Part shown: in pieces, positions 11,499 through 53,525 of the stretch
Numbering within the stretch: the stretch's first letter is position 1
Layout: the number at the start of each line of letters is the position of its first letter
Notes under the pieces: generated by a model
The model's input: only the letters and a program-made list of their open reading frames with translations
Told to the model about the DNA's origin: nothing
Database searches by the model: none
Made by a program: the position numbers and the translations under genes
Assembly (NCBI RefSeq): GCF_052425735.1
Contig: NC_135758.1
Span: 19,406,001 to 19,470,000, forward strand
From: Oculina patagonica
Taxonomy: Eukaryota
Direction of reading: 5' to 3'
Length of the DNA stretch: 64,000 nt

Positions 11499-13331
11499 TT
11501 AATTTTCCTGTACTATGCTAACTTCAATGTACTTAAAGGCTATTTTTTCTGATTTGCTGTCGATGTAAATCTCCAGAAACAAGCCGTTTTGTGGATTCAG
11601 CTTGTGCTGGTAAATCATCTCCCTGCTGAAGCCGCCGTCGAGAGAAACAAAACAGGACCCCCACCGGTCAGACAGGCTCAACAGGGCCTCGATCCTTCCC
11701 GGGTACTTTGACTCGGAAGACTTCGGTAACTCGGAATCCTGGCGACGATGAGCTGCGATCCGGTCACTGGTTCCTTCGAAACCAAGACACGGAGCCCCAG
11801 AATTGAAATTGTTCTTGTCCCGAATCATTGCGCCAATGAAGTACTGCCCATCTGAAATAACATAGGAGGGATCACTTTCTCCTTGACCGATTTCTGTATC
11901 AGTTCCGACCACCATCTTTACAACAAGTTTGGCATCAGAGTCAATGGTTGCTGGTGGAATGAGCGGTACTTTAATCATGCGAGCGTAGTTTTCTGAGGCG
12001 CTCAAAAAGGTCAGCCTTGTGGTGGTGACAGAGTGATGGTGGTGCACAAAAGTAGCTGCTTTCAGTAGTTTCATTGGTGTAAAAACTTGGTAATACCAAA
12101 GTTTTGCCTGGAAACAATAATATAACGACCAATTCAAAATACTTAAATCGCCTGTAAAGTAAAAATAGTAGGGTCAGTAAGGCAGTAATAGATGCTCAAC
12201 ACGACAACGACGACAAGGTTGGCATTTGTATCGATGACTCCTGGCGGAATCAGTGGAACGATCATCAGCCGATAGTGATTGCTTGGAGCGCTGAGGAACG
12301 TGAGTAGTTGAGGAGTGATGGAATTATGGTGATGGATGAAGGTAGCAGCTAAAGCAAACTTCATAGGAGTGAAGAATTTATAAAACACAAGCTGGATAAA
12401 ATAAGACATATAAGAGTCACTTAAATGTTCAGCTACGAAAACAAAAATCATCCAGGCGCCAATTATTTTAGTCCAAAGTCGGTACTAAGATCAAAAAGTA
12501 CAATTTGCTATTAATATTAAGTCTATTAACGTTACTAGTTTGTCCGGTGACTGAGAAATTTTCTCCTCTCCCAATCTCTAAACTTCTTCGGGTCCAATGA
12601 AATCTGTAAGTCCATGTTTAATATTGTAACTTTGGTTACCCATAATTGGAATGAAATGGGCAGCAATTTTTTTAAGGATAGTAAAAACATCTAAAATTTA
12701 GATAAAAAGCTTTAGGTGCAACAGCTCTCTGTTTATTGAGAGGTATAAAACTGGAGGAGAATGACTGTAACTCGGCAAATTATCTGTGTAATATAATATT
12801 TTGAATCTTAAACAAAATTCGGTAAAGAGATTCTAAATTGAAACAAACCGAGCCTACATGCCTTAAACTTCTTAGATGATATGCAAAAAACCAAAAGCTC
12901 AACTCTCATAGTGAAATCCCACTGCTTCCATGCCTCCTTCCCCCTCCAAGGTCAAAGGCCAACTTCTTTGGCTTAGCTTGAACATGTAACTTCGCATGTT
13001 TTTGCTTTAGGGCCGTGAAGCGATGGAAAAGACGGGAAGAACTCTTTCCAGTAAACAGCTTACTTATTGTTGGTTTTCTTTACAACATCTATGACTTGTT
13101 ATGATTTAGTGACGATTCCGAACTACGCTAAAAAGCATCGGAATAGAAGATGAAATGCTGGTCGTCATAATAGATTGCGAGTTAGTTATGATACGATTAT
13201 AGAACGGCTGTCACGTTTAGTGCCTGTCTATCTTTAAACGACAATAAAATATTCACCTGAGGATCAGCTATGGCGCTGTGAATCGTTAGAATGGTGAGCA
13301 TGATAAGGGTAGTTCGTATCATGTTGTCCAT
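11499..13331 (-). CDS. Secreted array protein, divergent copy C (~227 aa)
   Basis: Exon 1 13331-13257 MDNMIRTTLIMLTILTIHSAIADPQ (signal-peptide-like, CAG|GTGAAT, phase 0); exon 2 12107-11499 (ttgtttccag|GCA) AKLWYYQVFTPMKL...EVSIVQEN*, homologous to the other array cores. Confidence 0.75.
12209..12391 (-). pseudogene. 3'-truncated core-exon fragment inside the intron of copy C
   Basis: LVFYKFFTPMK...DTNANLVV nearly identical to copy A1, with intact acceptor and A-type intron flank; homology stops abruptly near 12209. Confidence 0.85.
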
Positions 13332-14277
13332 GATGAGATAAATCTTGCACAGTTGATCAACAGAATCTTAGTTAAAGAATTAACCAAGAAAGTAATTCGA
13401 TGTAAGAAATGTAATACTTGTGCACGTGTCACGAAGAAGTGAAACTGTTTACTTTGCTTAGTACATCTGTATATGAAACGCATATGAATTGGACAGAGCG
13501 AGGAAACAATCCGTGTATATTAATAAGTTATATTTTCGTAGACTGAAGCCAGAAGAAAAGATAAGAAAAAAATAAGAAAAAATTGCTCAGACTGCACGAA
13601 AGGGGGTAGAAAGTAAGAGAAATTGTTGCGGTTTTCATATCAGCGTGAAGCATTCTTGTCACCAGAGCCCGCTTTTCGTTTGGTCAGCACCAAAAAGTTT
13701 TGGTGATGACCAATAGAAAAGCGGGCTCTGGGCACGAGAATGAGGGTAAAGGACAAATAGAACACGGCTGTCGCTTTTACGATCAGTCTTCGTCATCCTG
13801 CGTTAGTGGGTGGGCAACCTCGTTCCCATGGTCTCTCAAAGATCTTCGAAAAACCACGAGAAAGAGATTATTTGGACGGACTAAATGAACTTTCAGGTTG
13901 GGAACGAGTTTAAATATACGTCGGTCATGTCTCTTGGCAACTTCGCTGCTGAAAATCGTGGGCTCAGTCACACCGAAGATTTGAGATGGGATTAAAACCG
14001 GAAAAGGCCTCGTTCACCCGGAAGTTAAGATTGGACATAGACAGAAACTACAACATTACAGAGAAAATGGAACTTTTAACCGATAACCAGCTTTGACAGA
14101 GGGAAGAGAGAGGACTTGGGTTTTGCACATCAGAATCTCCTTTAAAACCCCAGGAAAGGAAAAATCAAATGTACACTTGGTTTTGCATCGAGTGAAAACT
14201 CATCTTTAATCAGCAGAAATTACACTACTCTTAACAATTCTTAATCAACTGCACTGTAATCGCTGCTGTAAGAGACA

Positions 14278-15333
14278 TTAGTTCTCCTGCAGGATGCTCA
14301 GCTCAATGTACTTGATGCCTTCTTTTTCTTGTGCGTCATCGCCATAAATCTCCAAAAACAGGCCATTGCGGGGATTCAACTTGTTCTGGTAAACCATTTC
14401 CCTGCTGAAACCGCCGTCTAGCGGGACGAAACAGGTTCCCCACCGGTCAGACAGGCTTAACTGGATCTCGAACCTTCCTGGGTAGTAAGATTCAGATGGT
14501 TTCGGGAGAGCAGCATCGGTATGACGAGTCATGGTCTTCCCACTGGGCCCATCGATACCCCGACAGGGGGCGGAAGATGGGTAGTTGGTTTTATCATATG
14601 TTACCATGCCAATAAAGCGTTGGCCATCAGAAATAACAAATGAAGGATCACTGTCCGCTGAACCAAATGTGGTTTCCAAACCGACCGCCATCTTGACGAC
14701 AAGGTTGGCATTTGTATCGATGACTCCTGGCGAAATCAGTGGAACGATCATCAGCCGATAGTGATTGCTTGGAGCGCTGAGGAACGTGAGTAGTCGAGGA
14801 GTGATGGAATTATGGTGATGGATGAAGGTAGCAGCTGAAGCAAGCTTCATAGGTGTGAAGAATTTGTAAAACACAAACTGGATAGAGTAAAACATATAAG
14901 AGTCAGTTATATAGCAAAGACTAAGACCTGTAATAAACCGCTAGTTAGCTCTTGAACTAAGGGCTACACTACAGATGCATTATACTACATCGCACGATGG
15001 AAGTGAAAGTTTAACACACTGTTGGCAAAAAGAGAGAGCAATGCTTAAAATTATCTCAGGCTGTTGATATAGTACTTAAGAGTCTATTCACGATTCATCG
15101 TCGCTGATTAAAGTAATTCCTCCGCCCAAAAGATAGAAACTGCTATTCTCGGCTACCTTTCTCCGCTTTCTCGCTGCTGTTGTGAACGGTTCGGTAAAGG
15201 AGAATAAAGCTTAAAGAAATTCAAGTTTTCCTTCATTTACCTGTGGCTGTTTCTTTGACGCGTCATTCTTGAGATCGTGTGCCTGGGCCAGCGATACAGC
15301 AAACATGAACAAAATGATTTTGATCAGTCTCAT
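14278..15333 (-). CDS. Secreted array protein, copy A1 (230 aa)
   Basis: Exon 1 15333-15241 MRLIKIILFMFAVSLAQAHDLKNDASKKQPQ (CAG|GTAAAT); exon 2 14877-14278; ATTAAA at 14210-14205; TATAAA at 15486-15481. Confidence 0.9.
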
Positions 15334-15480
15334 CTTTGAACTAAAGTTTCAGGACTGCTTCGGTTGAAGAACTGGTAACAGTTTGAAAACAATGAACAAC
15401 CGAACTCTGTCTTTGTGCGGAACATCAATGTATGTGATCTGACGACTCGAAAATTTTCGCGTCCACGACTCAGACATATA

Positions 15481-52020: not shown

Positions 52021-52124
52021 CAAGCTCGTTCCCAGGGTCTCTCTCTCCCCGCCCACTTCTCTCGCTCCTCGCTCTTACTTTCGCTCTTGGGGGCGGGGAG
52101 AGAGAGACCCTGGGAACGAGGTTG
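52021..52124. repeat. Short palindromic interspersed repeat
   Basis: ctcgttcccagggtctctctctccccgccc / gggcggggagagagagaccctgggaacgag. Related short hairpins occur at ~13652-13742 and ~42780-42866. Confidence 0.85.
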
Positions 52125-52411
52125 GAAAACCGTAAGGCAGTAATGATGAAAGTAAGCGGAAACCACGACATTACAGAGACAAGGGAAATTTTCGACCGAT
52201 GACCCATGGGAAAGAGAAGAGAGAAGTTAGGTTTCGCACATCACTATTAAAAAAAAAGATTAAAGAGATCAGTAAAGAAGAAAAAAAATGGACGCTTGGT
52301 TTTGCTTTTAGCAAAAACTCATCTTTAATCAGATGAAACTACATTGCTCTTAACAGTGCTTCAGTAATCAGCGGAAATGATGTTAATTTTTTGTACTGGC
52401 TGCAACAGACA

Positions 52412-53525
52412 TCAGTTCTCCTGCAGGATGCTCAGCTCAATGTACTTGATTCCTTCTTTCTCTGGTGCGTGATGGCCATAAATCTCCAAAAACAGGCCGT
52501 TGTGGTGATTCAACTTGTTCTGGTAAACCATCTCCCTGCTGAAACCGCCGTCTAGTGGGACGAAACAGGTTCCCCACCGGTCAGACAGGCTCAGCTGGAT
52601 CTCGAACCTTCCTGGGTAAAACTGAGTCTCGGATGGTTTCGGGAGGGTAGGATCGCGGAAAGTATTACTCAAAGTTGTCCCACTGGGTCCTTCGTAACCA
52701 AAACATGGGGCATGATCATTGTAGTTGGTTTTATCAGCTGTAAACACACCAATAAAGCGTTGGCCATCAGAAACACCGAATGAGGGGTCACTGTCCGCTG
52801 AAGCAAATGTCGTTTCCAAACCAACCGCCATCTTGACGACAAGGTTGGCATTTGTATCGATGACTCCTGGCGGAATCAGTGGAACGATCATCAGTCGATA
52901 GTGATTGCTTGGAGCGCTGAGGAACGTGAGTAGTCGAGGAGTGATGGAATTACGGTGATGGATGAAGGTAGCAGCTGAAACAAGCTTCATAGGTGTGAAG
53001 AATTTGTAAAACACAAGCTGGATAAAATTAAACATATAAGTTACTCTTTCGGCGATTTATACATAAATCTGTTACTGATTGAGGCTTAGACTAGTCTTTT
53101 ACGGACTCTCGAATAGCGGCTAGTATCAAGGCAGACAGACAGATGTAACCTGCGATCAGGGGCATTGTATGTGCTCTATTCTCTACGGGGCTTGCGTATT
53201 TTCGCGCGACTAGCTCGGGAAAAGTATCCTGTTGGCAGAATATAAGCCTATTGACAAAAACAGCGAGAAATGCTAAAAATATTCTTTTGCTATTAGTTCA
53301 TTGTAGTTGAGAGTGTATTCGCGATTCATAATCGCTAGTTCAAGTGGTTTCTCTGACCAAAAAATCTCTCTTCTGACGGCTGTTGTAAGCGACTGCGAAC
53401 AAGGAAAAAAAGAGGTTCATAACGTTTACCTGTGGCTGTTTCTTTGATGTGTTTTCATCATTGAGATCGTGCGCCTGGGCCAGCGATACAGCAAACATCA
53501 ACAAAACTATTTTGATCAGTTTCAT
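52412..53525 (-). CDS. Secreted array protein, copy A3 (233 aa)
   Basis: Exon 1 53525-53430 MKLIKIVLLMFAVSLAQAHDLNDENTSKKQPQ (CAG|GTAAAC); exon 2 53017-52412 open; ATTAAA about 85 nt after the stop. Confidence 0.9.

Follow-up and report, generated by a model that had tools for sequence, protein, structure and literature searches.

A tandem gene array in Oculina patagonica encoding candidate recognition proteins of a secreted, lectin-fold family with positively selected positions

A tandem array of genes for small proteins, in which a constant framework alternates with short hypervariable blocks, lies in a 64,000-nucleotide stretch of the genome of the coral Oculina patagonica (NCBI RefSeq assembly GCF_052425735.1, contig NC_135758.1, here C1:19406001-19470000; this whole stretch is referred to as the window). 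The array appears to be a single cluster within a large, unnamed family whose members are small secreted proteins (~230 residues), each of which would consist of a signal peptide and a single 200-residue β-sandwich of the concanavalin A (ConA)-like, legume-lectin type, and the family seems to have expanded by tandem duplication in stony corals. The conserved sandwich, marked by D84, D95 and E186 and, in corals, by a Cys105-Cys151 pair, would display variable loops that set the ligand specificity. The family would accordingly make up a repertoire of soluble, germline-encoded binding proteins; most likely they would bind glycans and serve as recognition or agglutinin-type molecules against foreign surfaces, including those of microbes and symbionts. 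Gene conversion between copies would homogenize some of the framework, and older, selected differences would persist in the central segment. This reading, of a secreted ConA-fold family whose germline-encoded members bind or recognize ligands, is considered rather probable.

Eight core exons (C, A1, B1, A2, psi, B2, B3 and A3) had been listed in a preliminary description made from the letters of the DNA, and a minus-strand open frame was found at each of the eight places. The discrete variable blocks (after SAPS, before SDPS, after F/YIG, after NY, the MTRHT segment and after EIYG) and the two invariant cysteines are likewise present as described there. A ninth full copy lies ~3 kb ahead of the window start; no further copies were found in the stretch 10-20 kb before the window or in the 10 kb directly after it.

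Structural modeling places the domain in a well-known fold class. The AlphaFold2 model of the B3 core, built on a 33-sequence alignment, is all-β, with a predicted local distance difference test score (pLDDT) of 93.1 and a predicted template modeling score (pTM) of 0.91, and Foldseek recovered legume lectins at E ~1e-6 in both PDB and Swiss-Prot, which bears out the β-sandwich proposed earlier. Structure searches of AlphaFold DB clusters and of the ESM Atlas likewise point to the ConA-like lectin/glucanase class, and a search of the ESM Atlas by features returned generic bacterial ConA-like clusters only. The likeness to many members of the ConA-like superfamily spans the whole domain, a two-sheet jelly-roll, and the best structural matches are non-catalytic lectins and receptor-binding modules. 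Regarding sequence, Pfam gave no model over the domain in 21 family proteins (three window proteins at E <=1 and 18 others, including the sponge and distant ones), and no PDB chain was matched by profile; a match to eIF2B as a PDB sequence relative came from a single protein at E 0.049 and was dismissed as chance. The earlier statement that no named family can be assigned still holds at the level of sequence searches, by which the domain belongs to no named sequence family, and has been overtaken at the level of structure: as modeled, the domain is in the ConA-like lectin/glucanase fold class, which is a fold assignment and not a family membership. Across corals, sponge and protists, D95, P104 and L177 are invariant and D84, G90, P135 and E186 nearly so, while C105 and C151 are nearly invariant in corals and absent from the distant homologues. 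The conserved acidic residues D84, D95 and E186 are present without being equated with the metal- or sugar-site residues of lectins.

The family is large in this genome (529 Mb), with 69 near-full-length stop-free matches and 13 fragments. On C1, copies occur in the window array, as a pair 0.4 Mb away and singly at 42.7 Mb; other chromosomes carry ~20 (C8), ~13 (C9) and ~30 (C13) copies, and C2, C4 and C6 have single ones. Close public relatives belong to the stony corals Desmophyllum, Montipora, Porites and Acropora, and all are labeled uncharacterised or hypothetical. A profile search of 1.8 billion representative proteins returned 498 matches (representatives at 50% identity), the distant ones including the homoscleromorph sponge Corticium candelabrum (E 2e-23), the ciliate Muranothrix and marine metatranscriptome sequences; this taxonomic range is a sketch, as the names obtained for the 30 representatives looked up were limited to stony corals, a sponge and a ciliate. 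In the Muranothrix homologue (P0255), the domains lie within a 2431-residue filamin-repeat protein, and in one Oculina paralog (P0124, on C6) the domain is fused to a PAN/apple domain; these contexts suggest that it behaves as a mobile extracellular binding module. The Acropora homologue G8HTC1 is recorded as a hypothetical protein, and its clone C018-C12 and five accession numbers matched no paper in a literature search. The clone is absent from Hayward et al. 2011 (PMC3204972) and its supplements, and no expression pattern could be linked to G8HTC1. Literature searches on the Oculina genome and on coral "dark genes" or tandem duplication turned up no name for the family.

Selection was analyzed with site models (M0, M1a, M2a, M7, M8 and M8a) in an in-house GY94/F3x4 likelihood implementation, in which branch lengths were proportional to an IQ-TREE nucleotide tree; central codons were analyzed with their own tree, limiting artefacts of recombination and of uneven synonymous divergence (dS). 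For 11 Oculina copies, M2a was preferred over M1a for the whole exon (likelihood ratio test statistic (LRT) 18.8, p = 8e-5) and for the centre (LRT 8.7, p = 0.013), as was M8 over M7 for the centre (LRT 11.7, p = 0.003), and the flanks gave no signal (M2a against M1a, LRT 0.15, p = 0.93). A 17-copy set, comprising the nine intact Oculina copies and eight intact copies from three other coral assemblies, gave the same picture for M2a against M1a (whole exon, LRT 51.6, p = 6e-12; centre, LRT 21.8, p = 1.8e-5; flanks, LRT 0.7, p = 0.69). In its central partition, 60% of codons had a ratio of nonsynonymous to synonymous substitution rates (ω) of 0.08, 30% an ω of 1 and 11% an ω of 3.0. Alignment columns 65, 84, 86, 89, 92 and 113, which correspond to model residues 73, 92, 94, 97, 100 and 121, reached a posterior >=0.85; they fall before SDPS, after F/YIG, after NY and in the MTRHT segment. 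The diversifying selection proposed in the preliminary description is accordingly present in these four blocks at a minority of codons, and the site models give it no support in the blocks after SAPS and after EIYG. In all, ~10% of codons in the central third (model residues ~73-125) are under positive selection, and the scaffold is under strong purifying selection. The main variable loops of the model span residues 33-39, 68-78, 94-104, 122-136 and 181-187; by the rule of thumb that consecutive loops of a sandwich point in turn to either end of it, these loops would be predicted to share one end. By DSSP, variable and selected sites occupy 91-125, that is, the end of strand 7, loop 94-104, strands 8 and 9 and the start of the low-confidence loop 122-136, with further variable or selected sites in loops 38-39, 73-74 and 182-185.

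An independent cluster on C13 shows the same features more strongly. Twenty distinct paralogs taken from it are ~40% identical to the window array and have the same pattern of constant framework and variable blocks, with an overall ω of 0.66. The LRT of M2a against M1a was 107.7 with the whole exon and 82 with the centre on its own tree, where 19% of codons were assigned an ω of 4.4; M8 against M7 gave an LRT of 80.7, and the flanks an LRT of 18. Windows with ratios of nonsynonymous to synonymous differences per site (pN/pS) of up to 2.2-2.3 occur in this cluster. In a merged alignment, 10 of the 14 C13 sites with a posterior > 0.8 fell on columns that are hypervariable in the window array (odds ratio 16.8, p = 4e-6). 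The best argument that these positions would form a functional surface, which probably contacts ligands, is that selection has acted on homologous sites more than once.

The history of the array appears to be complicated by exchange between copies. Pairwise ω among the 11 close Oculina copies ranges from 0.2 to 0.5 (mean 0.31), with dS of 0.08-0.6. Stretches of the framework had been described as almost identical even at synonymous sites, and this is true of MIVPLIPPGV (pairwise synonymous difference, pS, 0.019) and FEIQLSLSDRWGTCF (0.04-0.10), compared with ~0.25 overall, but not of PLDGGFSREM (0.32) and AQEKEGIKYI (0.475), in which amino-acid change is almost nil. Along the exon, synonymous divergence is 0.02-0.1 at codons 11-45 and 131-145, where both of the nearly identical stretches lie, and rises to 0.3-0.57 in the central third. 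Trees of the 5', central and 3' partitions disagree, the leader type (A or B, described below) does not track the core type, and A3 groups with B-like cores in the central partition. Alignment between A- and B-type genes is confined to the core exon with ~130 nt of 3' flank and ~20-40 nt of intron, whereas A-A and B-B pairs are alignable over kilobases. In a Sawyer-type run test, 10 of 45 pairs had unusually long identical runs at p < 0.05, with global significance not reached, and a neighbour-incompatibility test was borderline (p = 0.05). Low-dS tracts of the C13 cluster lie elsewhere than in the window array, which disfavours a fixed nucleotide-level constraint. Together with the conflicting trees, the limits of alignment between A and B genes and the long identical runs, this argues for gene conversion that homogenizes parts of the exon and leaves older differences in the centre; such conversion between copies is likely rather than proven.

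Several observations weigh against a repertoire of binding proteins. No lectin is more than 13% identical to the domain, and none of the Pfam lectin models matches it; a shared fold is no proof of shared function. DSSP coil holds no significant excess of selected and hypervariable sites. Contrary to the expectation of dN/dS above 1 across the variable blocks, no 10-codon window of the array has a pN/pS above 1, the maximum of ~0.75 being reached after NY and in the MTRHT segment. Moreover, M2a against M1a for the centre was marginal and not significant with the nine intact local copies alone (LRT 5.4, p = 0.067), recombination inside a partition can still inflate likelihood ratios, and branch lengths were tied to the nucleotide tree. 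The hypervariability might be mostly neutral, with relaxed surface loops drifting, gene conversion wiping out framework differences and no adaptive diversification in the array. The ~30% of central codons that fit ω = 1 are in line with such drift, as is the central peak of pS, from which it follows that the centre is partly just older; indeed, most of the variation in the window array fits relaxed constraint plus gene conversion. This neutral account is nevertheless regarded as rather unlikely, since M2a and M8 outperform the neutral models even when the central partition has its own tree, the C13 cluster gives very strong signals that include windows of pN/pS well above 1, and selection falls on coinciding positions in both clusters.

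Other functions for a selected, secreted protein have also to be considered. The combination of small size, secretion, many copies and positive selection on loops would suit toxins or defence effectors (venom or antimicrobial proteins) engaged in an arms race with prey, predators or pathogens; yet Pfam and PDB searches revealed no sequence match to known toxin families, no membrane-attack or enzymatic module is attached, and the related Acropora cDNA clone carries merely the label of hypothetical protein, so that this role is held to be quite improbable. A structural or developmental role outside the cell, for example in matrix, adhesion, settlement or the skeletal organic matrix, and with no part in recognition, would agree with secretion, with the PAN fusion of P0124 and with the filamin-repeat context of P0255. 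However, loop selection and ~70 fast-diverging copies are unexpected of matrix proteins, and no Swiss-Prot coral skeletal protein is among the 30 best fold matches; the likelihood of this role is judged to be low. Slightly lower still is that of enzymes of the ConA-like glucanase/lyase class (GH16, PL14 or GH43-associated modules) acting on algal or microbial polysaccharides. Although the fold class includes glucanases, the best matches are to non-catalytic proteins, the invariant residues form no GH16-type ExDxxE strand motif on our reading of the alignment, and fast-changing loops would be unusual for an active site.

The organization of the genes is consistent with a secreted family. Gene models were obtained by tblastn with the annotated products and by DNA alignments (Table 1). 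A-type genes have two exons, the first of 31-32 codons (MKLIKI/MRLIKI...SLAQA), and B-type genes have three, with a first exon of 14 codons (MMLKSCAVMLVILL) and a second of 23 codons (ASSLADDQSS...GGSK). All introns are in phase 0, and every leader joins the same 200-codon core exon, which starts with (L/F)VFYKFFTP. From their charged, hydrophobic and small-residue pattern, the N-termini of both types are predicted to be cleavable signal peptides and the proteins to be secreted, which, with the tandem copies, agrees with the secreted multigene family proposed at the outset. Expression was examined with RNA contigs from four runs (X1, X2, X4 and X6) of three studies placed on 14200-20200; being in contig form, the runs indicate the presence of transcripts only. 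The contigs sit on exons, depth is ~0 in the A1 intron and in intergenic DNA, and the A1 intron 14878-15240 (GT..AG, minus strand) is spliced out in all four runs. Given this coverage and the exact splice joints, transcripts of the array genes, or of paralogs that are 95% alike or more, are made and spliced as modeled.

Table 1. Exons and core copies of the array (window coordinates).
Feature	Position	Strand	Remarks
C core exon	11499-12110	-	Divergent subtype, ~60% amino-acid identity to other copies
Core fragment	12218-12433	-	N-terminal 72 codons, 75-78% identical in their 72 aa to B3 and A2, then unrelated sequence
A1 core exon	14278-14877	-	200 codons + stop; start 14877 set by spliced RNA joint in 4 runs
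A1 exon 1	15241-15333	-	31 codons; N-terminus signal-peptide-like, ending AQA
B1 core exon	18222-18825	-	1-nt insertion near 18802, eight codons into exon
B1 exon 2	20059-20127	-	23 codons, TSSLADDQSS...GGSK; RNA joints end exactly at 20059
B1 exon 1	20542-20583	-	14 codons, MMLKSCAVMLVILL; donor GTAAGT
A2 core exon	24176-24775	-	100% match to annotated product P0007
A2 exon 1 (predicted signal peptide)	25110-25202	-	tblastn with annotated products
psi core	32378-32890	-	Without 5' end (~first 31 codons); frame still open
B2 core exon	35014-35616	-	DNA alignment
B2 exon 2	35981-36049	-	DNA alignment
B2 exon 1	36464-36505	-	DNA alignment
B3 core exon	43364-43969	-	Protein used for structure model (P0039:38-238)
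B3 exon 2	46913-46981	-	tblastn and DNA alignment
B3 exon 1	47705-47746	-	tblastn and DNA alignment
A3 core exon	52412-53017	-	tblastn with annotated products
A3 exon 1 (predicted signal peptide)	53430-53525	-	tblastn with annotated products

By their sequence, A1, A2, A3, B2 and B3 look intact. In B1, the DNA alignment reads CACAACCT where the other five copies have CAC-ACCT, so that the frame is shifted relative to the leader exons, and the annotated product (P0045) begins at an internal Met; B1 is a probable pseudogene. The homology of psi to the other copies stops at 32890, and its annotation (P0042) uses an unrelated leader exon at 33617-33658 that lacks a signal peptide. The core fragment next to C is a truncated copy that had been left uncounted in the preliminary description. 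Copy C itself stands at a dS of 1.2-1.8 and an ω of ~0.2 from the other copies; a search of 12.1-14.3 kb for its first (signal-peptide) exon did not find one, and another coral assembly also has a C-like copy near an A-like copy.

Several further elements lie in and around the array. Upstream of A1 exon 1, at 15871-16311 (-), a further spliced transcript with an intron at 16079-16175 (GT..AG) was seen in two runs, and in a single contig 15871 is joined to the core exon of A1, which would point to read-through or an alternative 5' exon. Just downstream of the B1 stop, at 17400-18020, RNA contig depth is very high; this region is not contiguous with B1, shows many loose ends and is probably an expressed repeat element. 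A remnant of a PIF/Harbinger-type DDE transposase lies between A2 and psi at 29892-30449 (-) (Pfam DDE_Tnp_4, E 7e-17), with a neighbouring open reading frame (ORF) at 31008-31241 (-), and may be connected with the way in which psi was truncated and its surroundings rearranged. Every B-type gene is preceded by an ORF of ~84-91 residues (22277-22531, 38211-38486 and 49463-49708, all on the minus strand), which sits in a B-specific upstream block of 2-3 kb that is 91-95% identical between copies; this ORF may be non-coding. Degenerate tandem repeats with a period of ~200 bp and units 72-77% identical by self-BLAST occupy 39680-41710, between B2 and B3, and a direct repeat with an offset of 196 bp and 99.5% identity over 411 bp is found at 9687-10293. 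In other coral assemblies (L047 2350-5509; L048 670-6405 and 17410-19080), homologous arrays are interspersed with LINE-type (endonuclease and reverse transcriptase) and Pao/BEL-type retrotransposon genes.

Compared with known systems, the coral family shares its predicted fold with the ConA-like domains of legume (L-type) lectins, such as peanut lectin and ERGIC-53/VIP36, at the low identity noted above; it is not matched by Pfam Lectin_legB (PF00139) or Lectin_leg-like (PF03388), nor by PDB sequence even with a profile. Snail FREPs, amphioxus VCBPs, sea-urchin 185/333 proteins, the C1q and lectin expansions of bivalves and the coral C-type lectin millectin are likewise secreted tandem paralogs in which a constant scaffold carries selected hypervariable positions; however, the coral family differs from them in fold, is unrelated in sequence and is known here from sequence, predicted fold and transcripts. 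Structural matches were also obtained to phage modules, namely the mycobacteriophage Douge baseplate protein, the C-terminal domain of TM4 gp23 and the CBM2 of the phage J-1 Dit, at 1-9% identity. These lectin-like domains belong to large virion proteins, and nothing in the match points to gene transfer or a common ancestry. Lectin-fold families that have expanded and carry selected loops are well known from invertebrate immunity; the present family is unnamed.

Corals are thought to depend on lectin-type pattern recognition for immunity and for the choice of their symbionts. The present family is among the larger secreted families of this genome, is transcribed, has a lectin-type fold as modeled and shows loop positions repeatedly selected in independent clusters. 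A census of coral lectins by InterPro domains has been based on listed lectin IPR entries (Noel et al. 2023, PMC10236652); because no Pfam model covers the domain, domain-based censuses of this sort probably miss the family. The sponge and protist homologues indicate that an unannotated, widely spread domain could be named. The analysis also provides a set of defined intact paralogs and, in the six selected columns listed above, candidate specificity residues. It is possible, though doubtful at present, that the ConA-fold family represents a major germline repertoire of variable soluble receptors in stony corals, the loops of which would discriminate surface glycans of microbes and Symbiodiniaceae or conspecific tissues and may thereby aid symbiont specificity, microbiome control or allorecognition.

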